Below, one piece after another: positions 1,930 through 63,800 of a DNA stretch of 64,000 nucleotides (the first letter of the stretch is position 1; the number at the start of each line of letters is the position of its first letter). The DNA lies in IMG/VR virus record IMGVR_UViG_3300036770_007495, positions 1 to 64,000 of that record; one strand, given 5' to 3'. The notes below the pieces were generated by a model. The model worked only from the letters and a program-made list of their open reading frames with translations. It ran no database searches and was not told the origin of the DNA. The position numbers and the translations under genes were made by a program.

Positions 1930-2458
1930 TCTGCACAATAGAGGTTTCCTGCGTTTGATCAACTACTTTGGGAAAGAATGTTCTTGCATCAGCAAGCCAC
2001 AGCATTTTTGCCTGATACACTTCAGGTGAGTTGTCTTTGTGGCGCAGTGCAATGTCTCTAAACCATCCCATTTGATAATCGTGTTTGCGCATTTTCAGCT
2101 TGGGGCGACTGGCATCATCAAACTTGATGTTGTCTTCTTTGTCGCGAGCAATGATGAGATGATGCAACTCATGATCAATGAGCGCAACGCGCTGCAATTC
2201 GTTCATTGCATTGTAAGCATCTCTGTCAATGGTGATTTCAGCATCCATTGCACCTTTGATGCGATTCTTCAATGAATTGATTTTGATGACAGCAAGTGCT
2301 GGGTAGCCACCAAACTTCACAGGATGATCTCCATTTTCATTGAAAGCAAATACTGCATCCACAGTGACGCCTGCTTCATGCAATTCATCATGGTAATCTT
2401 CCATGGTTTGCTTGATGAGATCCAAAACTTGTTGAGGTACGATGTCGTATGTTGTCAT
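1901..2458 (-). CDS. Putative phage metallopeptidase
   Basis: ALIDHELHH (HExxH) and LKMRKHD motifs; start at MTTYD. Confidence 0.75.
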   Translation of the reverse strand: MTTYDIVPQQVLDLIKQTMEDYHDELHEAGVTVDAVFAFNENGDHPVKFGGYPALAVIKINSLKNRIKGAMDAEITIDRDAYNAMNELQRVALIDHELHHLIIARDKEDNIKFDDASRPKLKMRKHDYQMGWFRDIALRHKDNSPEVYQAKMLWLADARTFFPKVVDQTQETSIVQNEQETHSQT

Positions 2459-2904: not shown

Positions 2905-3701
2905 AGAGGATAATTCTTTCTATACCAATGGACGCTTTCTACAAACTTTGCAATGGCTTCTTCTCTGCTATTTGCCGGGCTGGTTTGACTCTGCAATGCA
3001 CTCTCATCACAATTGTAGCATGTAGTACCTTTGCCTGGATGAGGCACACCGTCTTTGTCTTGAGTAGATACTTCGTAGCGCTTCAATGAATAAGGCTTCT
3101 TGAATCGCTTCCACGTCCAGGTGGAGATGAATTCTTTGCAATTGAGAACATACTCTTTGTCTGCATACTCTTTATTGCCTTTGATTGTTACAGTGTGTTG
3201 AGTAGTTCCATTGTCTTGTTCAGAGTAAGTGGCTCTACCACACAACACAACACGAGGATAGATGCTTGTGCTCAACCATTTTGGATCACTGGATTTCCAA
3301 CAATTGTCATATCGACCCAAATGAATGTTGAGATAACCACCATCAATGCAATCTGTATCTTTAACATATTTGATGCCCCAATCTCGTCCATCATATTTGC
3401 GATCTTCACTCAACCGCAAAATTTTGCGCCATGTATTGGAGTATCCCCATTTGGCTAAGTCAGCATGAACATACAGAGAGAAGAGGAACGGAACATTGAT
3501 GCTGAAGCCGATGGTGTGTTCATCATTAGCCTTGCCATATACATTAAAGCCTGGCATGTCTACATCAGTCCATGGATAGAATTCAATGCCAACATTAACT
3601 CGGTCATGGTGTGAGCCCAAGATGTTGGCGAAGGGATAAATCCAACAACGCCAGCCTTTGTGCTTGCCATAATTTGATTCAATGCAATGAAAGTGTCTCA
3701 T
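2901..3701 (-). CDS. Hypothetical protein
   Basis: 266-aa ORF in operon. Confidence 0.65.
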   Translation of the reverse strand: MRHFHCIESNYGKHKGWRCWIYPFANILGSHHDRVNVGIEFYPWTDVDMPGFNVYGKANDEHTIGFSINVPFLFSLYVHADLAKWGYSNTWRKILRLSEDRKYDGRDWGIKYVKDTDCIDGGYLNIHLGRYDNCWKSSDPKWLSTSIYPRVVLCGRATYSEQDNGTTQHTVTIKGNKEYADKEYVLNCKEFISTWTWKRFKKPYSLKRYEVSTQDKDGVPHPGKGTTCYNCDESALQSQTSPANSREEAIAKFVESVHWYRKNYPL

Positions 3702-3702
3702 A

Positions 3703-4610
3703 TCAGAAATTTCCAGGAGCTACTTGAAGGCACTTGAGGCCGATTTCACGCCACATATCCACAACCTGCTGCCTATCGTCCAGAACAAATTCCACATCGA
3801 ATTTATCCTTGATGAGAGTATCATAGATTTCCTTCTTAACAATGGAGTCTCGACGATGATCACCTTCTTTGCGCATCATGAGATCGTAATAAGGAACCTT
3901 GTGTTTGTCAAGCCATGCAAGAGTCTTTTGACGGCAGACTTCGGTGCCTTCACGACCAGATACAATGAGAATAATATAACCTTTCTTTTGAAAAGCTTCA
4001 ACAATGCCATATACAGCAACATCCAAATGGTCTTGATCAACTTTGTCGTACTCAAACCAGTTGCGATCGCAACGATGCGCAAGAGTACCATCAATGTCTA
4101 CAATGATGGTGTTGCCTTTCTTGTTGACAAGTGGTACATCTTGCAGAGTTGGAAGAATATACCGCTGGTGCATGCCCTTGATGACCTTTTCACCAACAGG
4201 CTTGGCACGCAAAGAGTCGCGATGCAAACACTCGTCAAGAGACACATCCAAGAAGTCCTTGTACTCAACAGAGATGTTGGTGGTAAGATACTTGCACTCA
4301 TGCTTGTATCGCTGATCATCAGCAATCTGCTTCATGCGTTCAAAGTGCTTGTCTTCAAAGTTGGTGTCATCAACAATGATGGTTTCAATGCCACGAGCAA
4401 GCCACATGTCAACAAGAGCATAGCATCACGTGCATCAAGGATTAGCTGCTCATTGATCTTGGACCAAATGCCTGCATCAATCATGTCACGCAAGTCATCC
4501 TTGTTGACACGCTTCACCTTGCCATTGCTCTTGGCAACCTGCTCCTTGCTCCAAGTCGACTTGCCGCTCGCAGGCAGCCCGCGAGTCAAAATGATTTTCT
4601 GCTTCTTCAT
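3703..4610 (-). pseudogene. pseT: Polynucleotide 5'-kinase/3'-phosphatase (T4 PseT-like), split by a 5-bp duplication
   Basis: P-loop GLPASGKST and RVNKDDLR in ORF 4332..4610; VDDTN, DIDGTLA (HAD), SGR, DDRQQV in ORF 3703..4407; removing one AGCAT at 4417-4426 fuses the frames. Confidence 0.88.
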
Positions 4611-12563: not shown

Positions 12564-12858
12564 AACTGATACTCGCTTCTCAACCATTGCGCTCAGCATG
12601 CTTGGTGGTGTTGCATTGTTTATCATCACTGCCTTTTTAAGTTCAGATGCAAAGCCAAAACACAATGCACTGACACCTGAAACAATGGCAGATTATGTCA
12701 TCAATGAAATGCCTGATAGTGTTTTGCGACGCAATCTTCTCATTGTGTTTGGTGCTGAATATGGTGAAGACTCACAAGAGCTCAATGATTTGCTCAGCAT
12801 GTTCTCTCAAATGAAGATTGATCAACTGCAAAAGCAACGTAGCAAAGATTCTCTGTAA
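12550..12858 (+). CDS. Hypothetical membrane-anchored protein
   Basis: One N-terminal TM. Confidence 0.55.
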   Translation: MSTTETDTRFSTIALSMLGGVALFIITAFLSSDAKPKHNALTPETMADYVINEMPDSVLRRNLLIVFGAEYGEDSQELNDLLSMFSQMKIDQLQKQRSKDSL

Positions 12859-12863
12859 AACAG

Positions 12864-12897
12864 TTGACTGTCTGCAGATTTGCATTATAATGAATGC
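12864..12897 (+). promoter_or_regulatory. Sigma70-like early promoter, leaderless
   Basis: TTGACT-N16-TATAAT-N6-ATG. Confidence 0.8.
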
Positions 12898-14082
12898 ATG
12901 AACAATTATCTTGCTCAACACTTTTGGAACTACGAAACCAATTGCATTGATGGTCTGAAGCTGTGGAGTGCTCTGCAGCCGCACATTGCAAAAGGTGAAC
13001 TCATTGTCAACGAAGGCAAAGGTGATCGCGAAGGCCTCAAGCTTGTAACCTATTCCAAGACCTATCAGTACGAACACAATTCTGTTGCATGGGATCCTCT
13101 TGTGCAGCATTGCCGCGGCATCATCTTTGATGCAACTGATGACTACAAGATCGTAGCTCTTCCCTTCTCCAAGTTCTTCAACTATGGTGAAGGCGGCATT
13201 CATTATCCTTCCGCTGGTGCTGAGATTGAACAGGTTTGGACCAAATATGACGGTTCACTGTTCATCATCTTTCATTGGAAAGATAAGTGGCATGGAACTA
13301 CCCGCGGATCACTCAATTCAGATATTGGACAGGTGGGTCAGCAGATTCTGGATAGCTATGTGCACAATGGATTGGTTATGCATCGAGATTACACTTATCT
13401 TGCAGAGTTGATTTACAAGGAAAATCAAATTGTTGTAAATTATGGTGATGATCGCAAGCTTGTGCTGCTTGGTGTGCGTAATCGTTATGCAGGCCATGTT
13501 TATATGCCTGATTGGATCATTGATCGCTTTCATGGTGGATTGACAATTAAGCCGTTTGAAGTTGCTCGTCGTTGGAAATTTGCAAACAAAGAAGAAATGC
13601 TTGCATGGCTCAACCAAACCAAAGGTACTGAGTTTGAAGGCTTTGTGGTGCACTTCTCTGATGAAACTGTTTTCAAGTTCAAGTCTGAAGACTACATGCG
13701 TCTGCATCGCATCATTGCTCAGTTCACGTTCAAGCGTGTGCTGGAAGCTGTGCAGCTGCATCAAGAAGAAGAAATTCGCAAGGCATTGCCAGAAGAGCTC
13801 ATCCCTGAATTCGATCGTTACAAGTGGATGATTGAAGACAAAGTGGACAGCATCATTGCATATGTTGACAAGATTGTGCACAATGCTCCAAAAAGCTCTC
13901 GCAAAGAGTTTGCACTTTATTTGCAACAGTATTACAAAGGTACAGATGCAATGAAGTATGCATTCAAGTACATTGACTTTGAAATGAACGTTGACAAGCT
14001 TGGCGAGCACATTTTGCAAAGCTTGCGCCGCGATGACTTTGAAGTTGCAGAGGACAAAAACAAAGATGATATTGATTCATGA
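12898..14082 (+). CDS. RNA ligase 1 (T4 RnlA-like)
   Basis: CRGIIF, PFSKFFN, KYDGS, TRGS, FEGFVV, KFKS.DY..LHR. Confidence 0.9.
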   Translation: MNNYLAQHFWNYETNCIDGLKLWSALQPHIAKGELIVNEGKGDREGLKLVTYSKTYQYEHNSVAWDPLVQHCRGIIFDATDDYKIVALPFSKFFNYGEGGIHYPSAGAEIEQVWTKYDGSLFIIFHWKDKWHGTTRGSLNSDIGQVGQQILDSYVHNGLVMHRDYTYLAELIYKENQIVVNYGDDRKLVLLGVRNRYAGHVYMPDWIIDRFHGGLTIKPFEVARRWKFANKEEMLAWLNQTKGTEFEGFVVHFSDETVFKFKSEDYMRLHRIIAQFTFKRVLEAVQLHQEEEIRKALPEELIPEFDRYKWMIEDKVDSIIAYVDKIVHNAPKSSRKEFALYLQQYYKGTDAMKYAFKYIDFEMNVDKLGEHILQSLRRDDFEVAEDKNKDDIDS

Positions 14083-15388: not shown

Positions 15389-16855
15389 ATGAACATCAAT
15401 CCTGCATCTCTCATTGACGGCTACAAAGTCGGCCACATTCATCAGTATCCCAAGAATACTGAAATCATCTTCAGCAATTTGACAGCACGTTCCACCCGCC
15501 GTCTCAACACTGACAAGGTGGTTTTCGCAGGCCTGCAGTACTTCGTCAAAGAGTACCTCATCAAGCAGTGGAATGAAAACTTCTTCCACAAGCCCATTGA
15601 AGAAGTCGTTCACAAGTTCAATCGTCGCATCAACAATTACATTGTACCTAACAATGTTGGTGATCAGCACATTCGCGACCTGCACGAGCTTGGCTATCTG
15701 CCAATTGTAATTCTTGCTCTGCCAGAAGGCACTGAACATCCCATCAAGGTGCCAAGCCTTGTCATCTGGAATACAGATGAGCGCTTTGGTTGGCTCACCA
15801 ATTATCTGGAGACCATTCTGTCCACCAGCATCTGGGGCCCTTGCACCAGCGCCACTACTGCTCACCAGTACAAAAAGTTGCTCATGAAGTATGCTGCAGA
15901 GACTGTTGGTGATACCAGCTTTGTTCAGTGGCAGGGTCATGACTTCAGCTTCCGTGGCATGTATGGTCTTGAAGCTGCTTGCATGAGTGGCGCTACTCAC
16001 CTCTTCAGCTTCACGGGCACTGACACTGTTCCTGCTATCGACTTCCTTGAACAGTACTACAATGCTGACAGCGAGAAGGAACTTGTTGGTGGCAGCGTTG
16101 CTGCAACTGAACACAGCGTCATGTGCGCTGGTGGTGCTGACAATGAGATTGGCACTTTCCGTCGTCTGATTCATGATGTGTATCCGACTGGCATTGTGTC
16201 CATTGTGAGTGACACTTGGGACTACTGGAACACCATCACCAACATTGCTCGCGAGCTCAAGGATGAAATCATGCATCGTGATGGCAAGGTTGTCTTCCGC
16301 CCCGATACTGGGGATCCAGTCAGGGTTGTCATTGGTGATGAAGATGCTGCAAAAGATTCACCTGAATATAAAGGCTCCATTGAATGTCTTTGGGAGGTCT
16401 TTGGCGGCAAGGTGAACGCCAAGGGCTACAAGGAGCTTGATCCGCATGTGGGTCTCATCTATGGTGACAGCATCACGCTGGAACGTGCTCAGCAGATCTG
16501 TGAAGGTCTCAAGCGCAAGGGCTTTGCCAGCACCAACATTGTGTTTGGCGTTGGTAGCTACACTTACCAGTATGTGACTCGTGACACTGATGGCTATGCA
16601 GTCAAGGCAACCTATGCCAAGATTGATGGTCAGGATAAGGAAATCTTCAAGTCTCCCAAGGGTGCTGCATTCAAGAAGAGTGCCAAGGGTCTGACTGCTG
16701 TCTTCAAGGATGCTGATGGTGAGTTCTACCTCAAGGATCAGGCCACTTGGGATGAAGTTCACAACTGCGAATTCGTTGAAGTGTTTGCTGATGGTCATGT
16801 CGTCAAGGATTATACTCTGCAGGAAGTTCGCAACAACCTGGCTCAATACGTCTAA
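15389..16855 (+). CDS. Nicotinamide phosphoribosyltransferase-like protein (Namat-like)
   Basis: DGYK.GH..QYP, HDFSFRG, ATEHSVM, VSDTWD, RPDTGDP, IYGDSIT, KKSAKG. Confidence 0.93.
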   Translation: MNINPASLIDGYKVGHIHQYPKNTEIIFSNLTARSTRRLNTDKVVFAGLQYFVKEYLIKQWNENFFHKPIEEVVHKFNRRINNYIVPNNVGDQHIRDLHELGYLPIVILALPEGTEHPIKVPSLVIWNTDERFGWLTNYLETILSTSIWGPCTSATTAHQYKKLLMKYAAETVGDTSFVQWQGHDFSFRGMYGLEAACMSGATHLFSFTGTDTVPAIDFLEQYYNADSEKELVGGSVAATEHSVMCAGGADNEIGTFRRLIHDVYPTGIVSIVSDTWDYWNTITNIARELKDEIMHRDGKVVFRPDTGDPVRVVIGDEDAAKDSPEYKGSIECLWEVFGGKVNAKGYKELDPHVGLIYGDSITLERAQQICEGLKRKGFASTNIVFGVGSYTYQYVTRDTDGYAVKATYAKIDGQDKEIFKSPKGAAFKKSAKGLTAVFKDADGEFYLKDQATWDEVHNCEFVEVFADGHVVKDYTLQEVRNNLAQYV

Positions 16856-24753: not shown

Positions 24754-25254
24754 ATGAGTGAAATTCTTAGAGCCGCAATGTATGCGCAACAAAAACACGC
24801 TGGCCAGAAGCGCAAAGATGGTAAACCTTACTTTACGCATGTTGAAGCAGTAGCCAACATTGTCAACAGGGAATGGTTCGTGCTCATTCCGCGTGAAGCA
24901 CAAGACAATTGGAACAAATGCAAAGACCAAGTGGTTGCTGCTGCTTACCTGCATGATGTCATTGAAGATTGCGGAGTTACCAAACAGGACCTCATTGATG
25001 CTGGCTTCTCTGTGATGACTGCGGAAATCGTTGATGCTCTTTCCAAGAAGCTTGGTGAAAACTACTTCGACTTCATCATGCGCATTCACAATGGTGATCG
25101 GCCTGTATACGACTCTTGCGGTGCATTTCGAGTTGGCATGGTTGCAGTCAAGCTTGCTGACTTGCAGCACAACATGAGTGATCTTCAAGAGGGTTCACAG
25201 AAAGACAAATATCGTTTGGCGCATTACATCCTCAGTTATTTCAATCCCAAATGA
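24754..25254 (+). CDS. HD-domain small alarmone hydrolase (SpoT/Mesh1-like)
   Basis: HAGQKRKDGKPYFTH, AAYLHDVIED, VKLAD..HN. Confidence 0.82.
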   Translation: MSEILRAAMYAQQKHAGQKRKDGKPYFTHVEAVANIVNREWFVLIPREAQDNWNKCKDQVVAAAYLHDVIEDCGVTKQDLIDAGFSVMTAEIVDALSKKLGENYFDFIMRIHNGDRPVYDSCGAFRVGMVAVKLADLQHNMSDLQEGSQKDKYRLAHYILSYFNPK

Positions 25255-42891: not shown

Positions 42892-43000
42892 TGAGTGCAT
42901 GGTGAAATGGTAAACACAGCCGTTGGCGAGGAGGTCGCCATTACGCGGGGCCGCTGATTTAATCACAGCTTGTGGGTTCAAATCCTGCTGCACTCAATCA
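42892..43000 (+). ncRNA. tRNA-Leu-like RNA with extended anticodon arm
   Basis: GAGTGCA/TGCACTC; GTGAAATGGTAAACAC D-arm; long variable arm; GTGGG-TTCAAAT-CCTGC; TGGCGA-GGAGG-TCGCCA apex. Confidence 0.6.
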
Positions 43001-58612: not shown

Positions 58613-59056
58613 GGGGGCGAACTGGCTTCGACTCAATTGGTTGATTCAGATTCGCATGCAGAGGTAGACTAGCTGGCCTCTATAAAAGCAAGTCAAAAAA
58701 CATAAACGCAGAAGACACTGAAGTCGATGCCCTCTTGGCGCAAGCTGAGTACATCTTCAACAATGCTGACGAATTCCTCGTCAACGAAGTTGAAATGGCA
58801 CTCGCTGCCTAAGCAAAAACAATGTTGGATCCTATTAAAAACATTGAGGCAAGCAATAGGTGGAGCTGAACAATGTATGCTCTTAAATCAAACATTGGGG
58901 TGATGTCAGACTCTTCACTGACATAGGTAGGCTCTAAAACTCAGGTTGATGCGCCATGCAAACCTTTTGCCAATGAAATTGCAAATGCATCCAAGCATGT
59001 AGACGGTTTGATGATGTTGATTGAACACAGGGGTTCGACTCCCCTCGCCTCCACCA
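58613..59056 (+). ncRNA. ssrA: tmRNA
   Basis: GGGGGCGAACTGGCTTCGAC 5' end; GGTTCGACTCCCCTCGCCTCCACCA 3' end; G3.U70; tag ORF 58708-58812 ending ALAA*. Confidence 0.95.
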
Positions 59057-61585: not shown

Positions 61586-61983
61586 AAAAGCAAAAAAAAG
61601 TTGTTGAATAACAGTTGAGTGTACATAAATAGACTGTACATTCAAAAAACATGAACGTTGATCTCACATGCAGCAAACCAATTAGCGAGGGGCACCAAGT
61701 GTCCGCGCTCGGTTGCATGTGGCCTGATTATCCGTCCTTGCAACGAAATCGATTTTCAAGATAATTGAAAAAAGAAGTTGAAGGAACAGAGATAGAGGGT
61801 ATTGTAGATACATAACAACAACGGTTCATGACGAGGGATGACCACAACAGCCCAAGAGTTCGCAGAATGCGACGTTCAGCCAAAAGCTGCCAGTGTAGTA
61901 AAGTATTGAAATGAAGCAAAGTGGGTTAGTAGTGCACAAGCACGAGGCTTCCCGGGTAGCCCCAAAAGCCACGATTTTCAAAA

Positions 61984-62058
61984 GGCTGCTTAGCTGAGAT
62001 AGATTAGCGTCTGCCTGAAGAGCAGAAAAGACTGGAGCGTTACCAGTAGCAGCCACCA
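61984..62058 (+). tRNA. tRNA-Phe(GAA), non-canonical T-loop
   Basis: Full cloverleaf, CT-GAA-GA, T-loop AGCGTTA, CCA. Confidence 0.85.
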
Positions 62059-62062
62059 TTTC

Positions 62063-62151
62063 GGGACCTGCCCCCATCAGCGGACTGTAAATCCGTTGCC
62101 ATTAATAAGATGGGAAGTTGGCAAGTGGTGCGTTACCACCAGGGCCCACCA
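62063..62151 (+). tRNA. tRNA-Tyr(GTA) lacking a D-arm
   Basis: GCGGA-CT-GTA-AA-TCCGT; long variable arm; T-loop TGCGTTA; ACCA. Confidence 0.75.
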
Positions 62152-62306
62152 TTTCAAGTTGGAGATGACGCGCTGTGTTGTCTTTAAAACGCTAACCAAC
62201 AAGAACAAACTAGTAATGCCGCTAGTATATACAAAGGCAGTCCTCATCACCTTATGGTGCTGATATGGCTTCTTTTTCCGTGAGCCCGTTAATCACGGAA
62301 TATTTT

Positions 62307-62397
62307 GGAGAGAGCCCGGCTAGACGAGGAGCAATCTTGGAAAGATTGTAACACTTCGAAAGAGGTGTTAAGGGTGCGAGTCCCTTTCTCTCCTCCA
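62307..62397 (+). tRNA. tRNA-Ser(GGA)
   Basis: CAATC-TT-GGA-AA-GATTG; long variable arm; T-loop TGCGAGT; CCA. Confidence 0.8.
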
Positions 62398-62403
62398 TTT
62401 TAT

Positions 62404-62493
62404 GGGCAGTTAACTAGACAAGCGCGCTGGGACCGACTTGAAATCGGATCGAGGTCGAAAGGCCTTGGGGTGCAAGCCCTCAGCTGCCCGCCA
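62404..62493 (+). tRNA. tRNA-Ser(TGA)
   Basis: CCGA-CT-TGA-AA-TCGG; long variable arm; T-loop TGCAAGC; GCCA. Confidence 0.82.
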
Positions 62494-62499
62494 TTTTAT

Positions 62500-62574
62500 G
62501 CGGATATAATTCAGTGGTAGAATATCTCGTTGCCAACGAGAGTGTCGTCGGTTCAAATCCGACTATCCGCTCCA
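62500..62574 (+). tRNA. tRNA-Gly(GCC)
   Basis: Canonical cloverleaf, TCCA. Confidence 0.95.
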
Positions 62575-62655
62575 ATTAACCGTAGTGGAGAATCTACGGC
62601 ATAACAAAATCTCTTAGATTGCAGAAACCTAACAAAACGCTGCGCCTATTTCAAA

Positions 62656-62732
62656 CGGGATGTAGCTCAGCCTGGTAGAGCGCTTGCTTTGGGAGCAAGA
62701 TGTCGTCGGTTCGAATCCGGCTATCCCGACCA
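62656..62732 (+). tRNA. tRNA-Pro(TGG)
   Basis: Canonical cloverleaf, ACCA. Confidence 0.95.
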
Positions 62733-62934
62733 ATTTTGCGGAGCAGAAATGCTAGTGTGCGGCCGAAAGACTGATGATGCGGCGTTTCGGGTAAAACCTC
62801 GCGATCATCTCGCAAATTTAGATGTGGGTGAAAGTCCCAGAAGCATCACAGATGCTTGTTCCACGACGGGCTCTAAAGACTTGAACTGACAAGTGCAAGG
62901 GTGAGTGTAAAGGTACTCCCCACAAATTTCAAAT

Positions 62935-63009
62935 GCGGTGTAGATGTTAATGGCTGCACACCTGACTTCCAATCAGAAGGAGGGGGTTCGATTCCCCCAC
63001 ACCGCACCA
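62935..63009 (+). tRNA. tRNA-Gly(TCC)
   Basis: CTGA-CT-TCC-AA-TCAG; TTCGATT; ACCA. Confidence 0.88.
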
Positions 63010-63013
63010 ATTT

Positions 63014-63234
63014 TATCAGAAGGAAGTTGGCTTAGAAGCAGCCATCTATAATGAGTGAAGCGAAGTACGAGTCTCCAACATCAACGGCCTAGTAAGGTGA
63101 CTGTGATAATGCATGATGTATCAGAGTCAGATATTGGCTCATGCGTTGGATATCGTCTGACTGCGGATAGTAAAAGAGCACCCCGTAAATGGTAAGGCTT
63201 AATTCTTCTTAGGCGTAACAGCACACCTCTGATA
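63014..63234 (+). ncRNA. 23S rRNA GTPase-associated-centre (H43/H44) mimic with internal insertion
   Basis: GTTGGCTTAGAAGCAGCCATC and GCGTAACAGCACAC match the L11-binding domain; closed by TATCAGA/TCTGATA. Confidence 0.75.
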
Positions 63235-63242
63235 TATTTTAA

Positions 63243-63336
63243 GGATCCATGACAGAGCCTGGTATTGTACGTCCCTGCTAAGGACAGGTCAGCCCCTAAA
63301 AAGGCTGCGTAGGTTCAAATCCTACTGGATCCGCCA
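63243..63336 (+). tRNA. tRNA-Ser(GCT)
   Basis: GTCC-CT-GCT-AA-GGAC; long variable arm; TTCAAAT; GCCA. Confidence 0.92.
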
Positions 63337-63374
63337 TTTTGTTGCTTTAAATCGTTCATGAGATAAATCACGTT

Positions 63375-63800
63375 ATGAATGAAATTGAACAACTTAAATC
63401 AGAGTTTGAAGAACTCAAAAATGCACAACAAGAAACAATCTTTGAAGACCACAACATTGTGGGTGATGCAGAATCATATGTTGGTTCATTGAACAGTGGT
63501 CTAAAAGAGCTAGTTAATCACTACGTGATGGATTATCTCATCATCATGAATGCGTTAAAGTTCATGACTGGCCCAGTTGCTTGCTATCAAGGCAAAGCAA
63601 TTGAGGCACAAACAATCAAGTTTGAAACAATGAAAGAGTTGAGAGACTTTCTCAAAGACAAACAATATTTGCTGTATGTAATTGTTGCACATGCAAGTGT
63701 TACATATGAAGAAGTGGAATGGACTAAAACAATGGCACCTAATGCTAAAACAATTGGTGCAAAAATTTCATACCTCTTTAGAGGTCATATTCTAGAGTAA
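63375..63800 (+). CDS. Hypothetical protein
   Basis: 141-aa ORF within tRNA cluster. Confidence 0.6.
   Translation: MNEIEQLKSEFEELKNAQQETIFEDHNIVGDAESYVGSLNSGLKELVNHYVMDYLIIMNALKFMTGPVACYQGKAIEAQTIKFETMKELRDFLKDKQYLLYVIVAHASVTYEEVEWTKTMAPNAKTIGAKISYLFRGHILE

Follow-up and report, generated by a model that had tools for sequence, protein, structure and literature searches.

The stretch of DNA considered here, which we call the window, comprises 64,000 nucleotides (nt) of the IMG/VR virus record IMGVR_UViG_3300036770_007495 (positions 1 to 64,000 of that record). At 63014-63234 (+), between the genes for tRNA-Gly(UCC) and tRNA-Ser(GCU), lies an element containing both halves of the GTPase-associated centre (GAC) of 23S ribosomal RNA (rRNA), helices 43 and 44 (H43 and H44), with a 150-nt insert between them and, enclosing the whole, a terminal stem that takes the place of helix 42 (H42). 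Residues are numbered as is standard in the literature on Escherichia coli 23S rRNA, where the GAC spans 1051-1108; in annotated E. coli records the 21-mer discussed below begins about 1,055 nt into the 23S gene, matching the standard numbering within a few nucleotides. The parts of the element and its immediate neighbors are as follows.

62935-63009 (+): tRNA-Gly(UCC), CCA encoded (ARAGORN; Rfam tRNA, 45.6 bits)
Between tRNA-Gly and the closing stem (+): A/U linker of 4 nt, from the sequence
63014-63022 (+): 5' strand of the H42-like closing stem, UAUCAGAAG, pairing with 63226-63234
63023-63028 (+): H43 mimic, G1056-U1061, from the sequence
63029-63043 (+): H43 hairpin GGCUUAGAAGCAGCC, by sequence match
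63044-63047 (+): H43 mimic, A1077-U1080, AUCU, with nucleotide 1081 missing
63048-63052 (+): "1082 hairpin" AUAAU with the A1082-U1086 pair, which covaries in the family
63053-63057 (+): junction GAGUG, corresponding to G1087, A1088, G1089, U1090 and G1091, invariant in 55/55 rows of the 3'-anchored set
63058-63207 (+): variable insert domain, 150 nt, of the "GGUAAGG-module" class; the base of its stem covaries (columns 51-53 with 183-185)
63208-63212 (+): linker CUUAG (family consensus CUUUG), conserved in the 5'-anchored set
63213-63222 (+): top of the H44 hairpin, GCGUAACAGC, G-C closing pairs and the hexaloop GUAACA (G1093-A1098), from the sequence
63223-63225 (+): ACA, corresponding to A1101, C1102 and A1103, from the sequence
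63226-63234 (+): 3' strand of the closing stem, CCUCUGAUA, pairing with 63014-63022
Between the closing stem and tRNA-Ser (+): A/U linker of 8 nt, from the sequence
63243-63336 (+): tRNA-Ser(GCU) (ARAGORN; Rfam)

An earlier reading of the same DNA, made from its letters and hereafter called the first-pass annotation, had described two GAC halves between these tRNA genes, separated by about 156 nt and enclosed by a terminal stem, and all of these lie where it placed them; the halves as it quoted them are exactly 156 nt apart, and the insert as we define it is 63058-63207. Its H43 match of about 21 nt is likewise borne out, as the 21-mer GTTGGCTTAGAAGCAGCCATC (63026-63046) agrees with annotated E. 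coli 23S rRNA at every position and occurs once in the window, the chance expectation being 0.01 matches even with three mismatches allowed, while the 9-nt H43 loop UUAGAAGCA and its U1065-A1073 closing pair are matched exactly at 63029-63043. For H44 the annotation was right about the loop, with 63213-63222 fitting a G-U-A-R-N-A hexaloop closed by C1092-G1099 and G-C1100, but not about the helix, which is interrupted by the insert. The 1082-1086 pair is A-U in the window (63048/63052), and the closing stem forms eight of its nine pairs, the other being an A.C mismatch. Rfam detects no large-subunit rRNA sequence in the window at either the gathering score or E<=10, which agrees with the claim that no other rRNA flanks the element. 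The first-pass annotation did not mention that nucleotide 1081 is missing from the base of H43 (63047-63048), with loss of the A1057-U1081 pair. We rejected this 1-nt deletion as a sign of a pseudogene because the identical shorter junction recurs in other members of the family, being shared by L166, L186 and L190 of the window sub-lineage.

The element belongs to a large, previously unannotated family that is found almost only in phage sequences and is carried by well over a hundred unrelated phages. A pattern anchored on the 5' half and designed to exclude true rRNA matched 99 IMG/VR loci, one anchored on the 3' half matched at least 120, and nearly all loci from both scans contain both halves; de-duplication left 135 unique and 126 clearly distinct copies, of 86-458 nt, among the matches listed. 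A covariance model built from one alignment of other phages' copies (A1, described below) finds 74 and 66 matches in the two sets of loci. In GenBank phages, blastn recovers the same split arrangement in the unrelated Aeromonas phage 4_4572, where it adjoins tRNA-Met, in Pseudomonas phage pf16, between tRNA-Asn and tRNA-Pro, and in the Serratia jumbo phage BF and related phages of Erwinia and Xanthomonas; further carriers, from a second query, are Pseudomonas phages Milchi, Astolliot and UNO-G1W1, Yersinia fHe-Yen9-03/04, Cronobacter GAP32, Pectobacterium CBB, and Xanthomonas XacN1 and XaC1. In the GenBank records of these cultured carriers the element is either without annotation or labelled "hypothetical protein". 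The existing Rfam family that might have covered the element, a possibility the first-pass annotation had raised, was not found: the window copy is without a family at E<=10 as well as at the gathering score, and in 19 other loci, scanned at the gathering score, no match falls on the element either; the matches in the window and in these loci are confined to tRNA, transfer-messenger RNA (tmRNA), group I intron and twister models.

Outside phage records the family is sparse. The 3' pattern run against 185,579 species genomes returned chiefly chance matches to a 16-mer, with some 22-29 real members among the 120 matches listed, and every displayed title among these is a metagenome-assembled genome (MAG) or an uncultured contig, often with tRNA arrays, titles being displayed for all but six of the real members (within L279-L306). 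The MAG bins concerned are assigned to Firmicutes, Bacteroidota, Chloroflexota, Nitrospirota, Actinomycetota, Saccharibacteria and Proteobacteria. A plasmid search gave only true rRNA operons among the 25 matches listed, and no record covering at least 80% of the query. Genuine contiguous 23S ribosomal DNA (rDNA) also occurs in records labelled as phage, for example in Paenibacillus phage Pd_22F (L003, MZ092003.1 82476-85513) and in many records of 2-7 kb, and probably stems from host contamination or from the packaging of host DNA; searches for the mimic, from which it is readily told apart, need to filter it out.

All members share one plan: a closing stem of variable sequence, G-G/A-A-N-G-U-N, the H43 hairpin, A-U/C-C-N-N-N-U-A-A-N-G-A-G-U-G, a helix of 39-349 nt, C-U-U-U-G, G-C-[GUARNA]-G-C-A-C-A, and the closing stem again. 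Homologs and covariation were the check that the first-pass annotation itself had proposed, and both are abundant. In A1, a MAFFT alignment of 31 short members in which pairs were counted against shuffles and slid controls, 94.1% of cells pair, compared with 71% in shuffles, and the covariation score is 0.594 against 0.146 for shuffled alignments, a value that 0/500 shuffles reach and that slid controls (0.09-0.16) do not approach. Double changes occur in 8/8 closing-stem pairs, in pairs 1057-1081 and 1058-1080, and in three basal pairs of the insert helix; RNAalifold, run independently, predicts the same helices. Beyond A1, the GAC-specific 1082-1086 pair covaries (U-A 44, C-G 31, A-U 18, n=101), and so does the upper H43 stem in the 3'-anchored set, where GGC/GCC is replaced by AGC/GCU, GGA/UCC, GGG/CCC or UGA/UCA. 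Two substitutions in the window had been called compensatory. The change of 1058-1080 from U-A to A-U is real, and the pair covaries across the family (A-U 23, G-C 39, U-A 33, C-G 3); the change of 1090-1101 to U-A fits a pair, but U1090 and A1101 are fixed in the family and show no covariation within it. The covariance model R1, built only from the copies of other phages in A1, finds the window element at 63009-63238 with 90.7 bits (E 2e-26), and by deleting the insert it also finds the true GAC in the 23S rDNA of E. coli (44 bits) and Paenibacillus (60 bits), so that the kinship to the GAC holds for sequence and structure together.

On the strength of these covariation statistics, the element encodes an RNA whose GAC fold is maintained by selection and is not captured rDNA in decay, as the first-pass annotation had argued and as the pair counts, the RNAalifold prediction and the 126 distinct copies all indicate. 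The opposite view, in which the element is a neutral remnant of captured host rDNA, or a pair of rRNA exons flanking an intron or mobile insert, can appeal to the 21-nt identity to 23S rRNA and to the presence of real rDNA in some "phage" records such as L003. It is nonetheless ruled out by the covariation data, and we assign it practically no probability: the 126 distinct copies have one architecture with extensive covariation, the closing stem is unrelated to rRNA H42, there are no further rRNA flanks, some inserts are no longer than about 39 nt, and group I and group II intron models match neither the window insert (E<=10) nor the inserts of 19 further loci (gathering score).

What the family conserves, and what it lets vary, bears directly on what the RNA might bind. 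Each half was read from the set anchored on the opposite half, which reduces the bias of motif-anchored scans. Residues that are invariant or nearly so comprise G1059, U1060, G1063, C1064, G1071, C1072, A1077 and C1079 in the 5' half, G1071 and C1072 being invariant in the 3'-anchored set; U1083, A1084, A1085, G1087, A1088, G1089, U1090 and G1091 at the junction; and, in the 3' half, the C-UUU-G linker with C1092, G1093, U1094, A1098, G1099, C1100, A1101, C1102 and A1103. In the 5'-anchored set the H44 hexaloop and its closing pairs are invariant in 57/57 rows except at 1095-1097 (A1095 is A in 53/57, and A1098 is present in 57/57), and the linker counts are C 55/57, U 56/57, U 55/57, U 53/57 (A in three) and G 50/57. 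According to established structural work, this invariant set includes the residues that build the tertiary core of the GAC. The variable positions are 1061, the covarying pairs, 1096, 1097, A1067 and G1068. Position 1067, almost universally A in bacterial rRNA, is A in 37, G in 11, C in three and U in two of 53 copies (about 70% A), and positions that vary in rRNA (1061, 1058/1080) vary in the phage RNAs as well. Position 1061 is known to be unconserved in rRNA (PMC6239185), and thiostrepton, EF-G and the tRNA elbow all make use of the exposed base A1067 (PMC5829649); a passage of PMC6239185, citing Blyn et al. 2000, states that binding of L11 needs the tertiary fold of the GAC. Since the fold residues are fixed and A1067 is relaxed, selection preserves the fold while relaxing at least one factor-contact base, a pattern that favors uL11 as the direct binder. 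The closing stem differs in sequence in every member and has neither conserved sequence nor a conserved kink-turn; mimicry of the L10(L12)n site in particular, which had also been suggested, is therefore not supported and looks weak.

The insert is as constant in its position as it is variable in its length. In all members it leaves between G1091 and C1092: G1091 pairs with a linker C, opening the insert helix (the corresponding G50-C186 pair is present in 30/31 members of A1), and C1100 regains its pair through an added G. A continuous H44 helix (1087-1102) without a branch is therefore absent, every member having the extra helix and the CUUUG linker. The insert class found in the window is the commonest recognizable one, present in 32/126 distinct members, and has these parts.

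63060-63068 (+): GCGAAGUAC near the 5' end of the insert, a class feature
About 63063-63160 (+): long hairpin
63165-63172 (+): GGAUAGUA, a class feature
63176-63200 (+): conserved small hairpin module, whose outer stem covaries between members

The AGUA/GAA pairing within the small module looks like a loop-E motif or S-turn. With this module recurring in the window class and a different hairpin in other members (see below), the insert behaves as a second domain, as the first-pass annotation had anticipated. A proposed pairing of AAAG (1084-1087) with the CUUU linker was rejected, as variants on either side are uncompensated. Besides the H44 insert, L107, L173, L184, L192, L168 and L196 use a second insertion site after A1077, where a further hairpin breaks the 3' strand of H43.

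When all inserts were compared with an E. coli rrn operon (blastn-short), the sole similarity above noise was a 14-nt exact match in L169 to the sarcin-ricin loop (SRL). A complete SRL-like hairpin, with the S-turn AGUA/GA and a C-G-closed GNRA tetraloop, is present within the inserts of L029, L124, L134 and L169 and, through a scan aimed at the hairpin, of L321 and L322/L323, and those of L161 and L025 carry loop variants, giving a subclass of nine loci and eight distinct sequences (L322 and L323 are identical in that region) with RNAs of about 390 nt.

L029, 8680-8713 (-): SRL-like hairpin
L124, 7828-7861 (-): SRL-like hairpin
L134, 3778-3811 (-): SRL-like hairpin
L169, 832-865 (+): SRL-like hairpin
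L321, 2456-2489 (-): SRL-like hairpin
L322, 8494-8527 (-): SRL-like hairpin
L161, 8412-8445 (+): SRL-like hairpin, loop variant
L025, 3675-3708 (+): SRL-like hairpin, loop variant

The SRL motif occurs seven times in 2.55 Mb of fetched loci, and five of the seven occurrences are inside inserts on the RNA strand. Its flanking stem (alignment A4) shows double changes in 7/7 pairs with 97% pairing, and G2655, U2656, A2657, C2658, G2663, G2664 and A2665 are invariant in the subclass. In the window insert the 8-mer AGUACGAG was considered as SRL-like and rejected, since it sits inside an ordinary helix, with neither a closing G nor a GGA strand. The factor-binding centre of the ribosome consists of the GAC and the SRL (PMC2330231); joined in a single RNA, they mean that the subclass unites both rRNA halves of the ribosomal factor-binding site, from which we argue that the relevant property is resemblance to the whole factor-binding platform.

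The genomic setting suggests how such an RNA might be made. A tRNA gene lies within 100 nt of 54/135 unique copies and within 500 nt of 75/135 (56%), always on the same strand, in keeping with the placement in tRNA operons, and the stable RNA form, that the first-pass annotation predicted. Same-strand tmRNA genes occur in 8/126 loci, the window included, five of them within 213 nt (22-213 nt from the GAC-like RNA in L029, L092, L171, L187 and L015). Some phages have two copies, as in L172, a direct tandem at 3842-4091 and 4095-4341 (-), and L191, at 1114-1237 and 2169-2366 (+). The adjacency of tRNAs, which in 54/135 copies are 13-24 nt from the motif-defined core (G1062-A1103), and the A/U-rich linkers on both flanks could also be taken to mean that the element is a structural or processing module of tRNA operons, that is, a nuclease-resistant spacer, processing signal or stabilizer with no ribosome-related ligand. 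We regard this as quite improbable: there is no tRNA in the fetched stretch for 40/135 copies, including that of Serratia phage BF (L004), a spacer would have no need of near-identity to rRNA at exposed bases irrelevant to the fold (A1095, the H43 loop), and the co-option of the SRL would be left unexplained. Among these highly diverse carriers the RNA is not accompanied by a dedicated phage protein: when 2,267 open reading frames (ORFs) within 4 kb of the element in 126 loci were clustered with blastp, no conserved neighbor emerged, the largest cluster covering 7/126 loci. No phage partner is conserved, and in phages of many host phyla the RNA is kept nearly as constant as rRNA, which points to a host ligand that is universal and recognizes the base of the ribosomal stalk. 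Two side observations concern the same tRNA-rich stretches: a group I intron (70 bits) lies at 2941-3164 (+) of L161, and a type-P5 twister ribozyme (38 bits, barely over threshold) at 12687-12763 (+) of L168.

Overall, we believe that a trans-acting decoy of the ribosomal factor-binding platform is the best explanation, a hypothesis that we would judge as apt to be right as wrong. For example, consider the window phage during infection. The interval 63010-63242 would give rise to a stable non-coding RNA of about 220 nt, co-transcribed with the phage tRNAs, its 5' end set by 3' processing of tRNA-Gly and its 3' end freed by the RNase P cut at the 5' end of tRNA-Ser. The RNA would adopt the GAC tertiary domain, with the H43/H44 three-way junction mounted on a generic H42-like stem and an additional helix grafted between G1091 and C1092. 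Off the ribosome it would present the GAC surface, plus the SRL in one subclass, and thereby capture a protein that normally docks there. Host uL11, which recognizes the GAC tertiary fold and not the exposed loop bases, is the most likely direct ligand, and is probably the bound protein. The resulting ribonucleoprotein would then divert or blunt a stress or defense activity aimed at the ribosome, whether a stringent factor, a toxin or a translational GTPase, and the phage would benefit by keeping translation running. The family, its structure and GAC homology, its genomic setting and the SRL subclass are shown by the sequences, whereas we infer that the RNA is expressed as a separate molecule, binds uL11, acts as a decoy and benefits the phage. 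Stated in its boldest form, as a portable, miniature factor-binding centre (GAC, sometimes with SRL, probably coated with uL11), carried by phages of many host phyla, that captures ribosome-directed proteins off the ribosome (the stringent factor with its tRNA, translational GTPases or ribosome-inactivating toxins of host defense), the hypothesis is a tentative one to which we give slightly less than an even chance. Isolated SRL and GAC oligonucleotides do bind EF-G and IF2 (PMC3496166), as Munishkin and Wool 1997 likewise reported according to a citing passage of PMC5829649.

At the same time, several observations weigh against the decoy hypothesis. It is not obvious that titration of uL11 from assembled ribosomes is feasible within one infection cycle, and the insert that interrupts H44 is a possible obstacle to uL11 docking. 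The SRL hairpin is absent from the window copy and present in only about 5% of members, and its tetraloops vary (GAGA, GAAA and GGGA, with AGAA and CAGC in the two variants), which is not expected of a strict mimic; the relaxation of A1067 speaks in the same way against strict mimicry aimed at EF-G or a loop-specific toxin, and the H42-like part has no conserved L10 determinants. The folding energy of the element as a single sequence is unremarkable (z = -1.04 against shuffles). Finally, both scans were anchored on motifs, so that family-wide conservation is partly ascertained.

A rival model, close to the leading idea of the first-pass annotation, holds that the RNA is a uL11 sponge that phenocopies relC: ribosomes without uL11 cannot activate RelA, so that tRNA or amino-acid stress caused by the phage would evoke a blunted stringent response. 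Retention of the fold-building residues with relaxed factor-contact bases is what such a sponge would be expected to show, given that L11 recognizes the tertiary fold (in the passage of PMC6239185 noted above), and the universality of RelA and uL11 fits the breadth of the carrier MAG taxa. The alarmone-hydrolase-like gene to which the first-pass annotation drew attention is indeed a RelA/SpoT-type HD hydrolase (24754-25254, Pfam HD_4, E 2.6e-11), and an HD_4 homologue lies near one other locus, L089; this co-occurrence is confined to two loci. The L11/RelA idea alone fails to explain the SRL mimic of the subclass, and it leaves the obligatory insert unexplained as well, while it presumes that uL11 can be removed from assembled ribosomes, and the insert may clash with uL11. 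We therefore think this model unlikely in its pure form.

About as unlikely, in our estimation, is the model in which the RNA is a decoy substrate for toxins or defense effectors, such as ADP-ribosyltransferases acting on H44 or nucleases acting on the SRL, with the abundant RNA absorbing the enzyme and sparing the ribosomes. There is a precedent in a bacterial ADP-ribosyltransferase toxin that modifies 23S H44 at 1095-1098 (PMC8661411), where the phage RNAs keep A1095 and A1098 in the counts given above. The SRL subclass would unite two classic toxin targets, more than one copy is found in some phages, and the company the RNA keeps (tRNAs, tmRNA and an RNA ligase 1 gene) consists of known or likely counter-measures to attacks on translation. 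Yet no anti-phage system targeting the GAC was found in the literature searched, the SRL tetraloops vary whereas loop-specific enzymes require GAGA, and a stoichiometric decoy is a weak defense against a catalytic toxin. Less probable still is a trap or platform for translational GTPases or tRNA complexes (EF-G, the EF-Tu ternary complex, IF2, or RelA with deacylated tRNA), although the pairing of GAC and SRL as the factor-binding centre (PMC2330231), the binding of EF-G and IF2 by isolated oligonucleotides (PMC3496166; Munishkin and Wool 1997, as cited in the passage mentioned above), the contacts of the A/R tRNA with A1067 and A2660/G2661 (PMC5829649) and the location of the gene in tRNA arrays would all be in accord with it. 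Against it stand the conservation of A1067 at only about 70%, the absence of the SRL from most members, and the low affinity of isolated rRNA pieces for such factors.

Regardless of which ligand the proposed decoy would engage, the RNA is set apart from the systems that it most resembles. It shares with the 23S GAC (the L11/thiostrepton domain) the H43 hairpin and loop, the 1082-1086 pair with its covariation, the H44 hexaloop and the tertiary-core residues; it differs in being a stand-alone gene in tRNA arrays, in the arbitrary stem that replaces H42, in the obligatory helix of 39-349 nt with its CUUUG linker, in the fixed U-A at 1090/1101 and in the unconserved A1067. Unlike a genuine rRNA fragment, such as the rDNA of L003, it has neither the native H42 sequence nor flanking 23S sequence. 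The rplJ (L10) leader, RF00557, and other ribosomal-protein leaders are also natural off-ribosome mimics of rRNA, and the L10 leader mimics the same region; that leader, however, is cis-regulatory, has a structural resemblance and binds L10(L12)4, whereas the phage RNA is near-identical to H43/H44 in sequence, is not upstream of a ribosomal-protein gene, has tRNAs as its neighbors in the window and does not match RF00557 (E<=10). Synthetic "ribosome-in-pieces" oligoribonucleotides show that the isolated GAC and SRL bind ligands, and the phage subclass joins both pieces; the former are laboratory constructs, while the phage pieces are natural and conserved, with relaxed factor-contact bases. 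6S RNA and CsrB/RsmZ act by mimicry or sequestration, as we propose for the phage RNA, and GOLLD and ROOL are large structured RNAs of phage tRNA regions, but the GAC-like RNA is unrelated to them in sequence and structure, matching none of their Rfam models. To our knowledge none of these, nor the comparable T4 stable RNAs C and D, imitates a functional centre of rRNA. A prior description of such an RNA was not found in the literature searched, subscription-only literature lying outside that search. Given the absence of an Rfam 15 match, the lack of a description in that literature and the failure of the RNA to belong to any of the known kinds, we rate it, function aside, as a categorically new RNA class, one that would stand beside the few stable RNAs of phages (tRNAs, tmRNA).

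If the decoy hypothesis is true, a functional centre of the ribosome has been copied by phages into an independent RNA that is now widespread. No virus-encoded decoy of such an rRNA centre would have come before it, and it would add a new layer to the control that phages exert over host translation. It would offer a handle on what phages must neutralize at the stalk base, be it the stringent response, ribosome-targeting toxins or factor availability, and, as a natural experiment, it would test the "ribosome-in-pieces" idea, according to which the GAC and the SRL retain ligand specificity as isolated RNAs. The natural variation separates residues of the GAC fold, which are fixed, from residues of factor function, of which A1067 is relaxed, and the family is a ready set of stabilized GAC variants for structural work. 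The cultured carriers (jumbo, Pseudomonas and Aeromonas phages) are open to study now, and addition of the family to Rfam and to phage annotation pipelines, which presently leave the element blank or call it a "hypothetical protein", is warranted.

The remaining RNA genes of the window, and three protein genes that are plausible counter-defense or translation-maintenance genes, are listed here.

12880-14082 (+): T4-type RNA ligase 1 (Pfam)
15389-16855 (+): nicotinamide phosphoribosyltransferase, NAMPT (Pfam)
24754-25254 (+): RelA/SpoT-type HD hydrolase (Pfam HD_4, as above)
42893-42996 (+): tRNA match (Rfam alone, 37.2 bits; missed by ARAGORN)
58613-59056 (+): tmRNA (ARAGORN; Rfam, 98 bits)
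61984-62055 (+): tRNA (Rfam alone, 44.6 bits; missed by ARAGORN)
62309-62397 (+): tRNA-Ser (ARAGORN/Rfam)
62500-62574 (+): tRNA-Gly (ARAGORN/Rfam)
62656-62732 (+): tRNA-Pro (ARAGORN/Rfam)

The hydrolase, the RNA ligase and NAMPT together are consistent with a phage that invests in counter-defense; searched against all loci with tblastn, the three proteins gave only four isolated matches. The ORFs that lie wholly inside 61586-63374 are all short, the longest encoding 83 amino acids, and no Pfam domain was found in the ORF downstream at 63375-63800. Between tRNA-Pro and tRNA-Gly a spacer of 202 nt, 62733-62934 (+), contains no long ORF and no Rfam match and folds no more stably than its shuffled versions (z = -0.62); it may be another stable RNA or a mere spacer. 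The tRNA match at 42893-42996 spans 104 nt and may contain an intron or a long variable arm.

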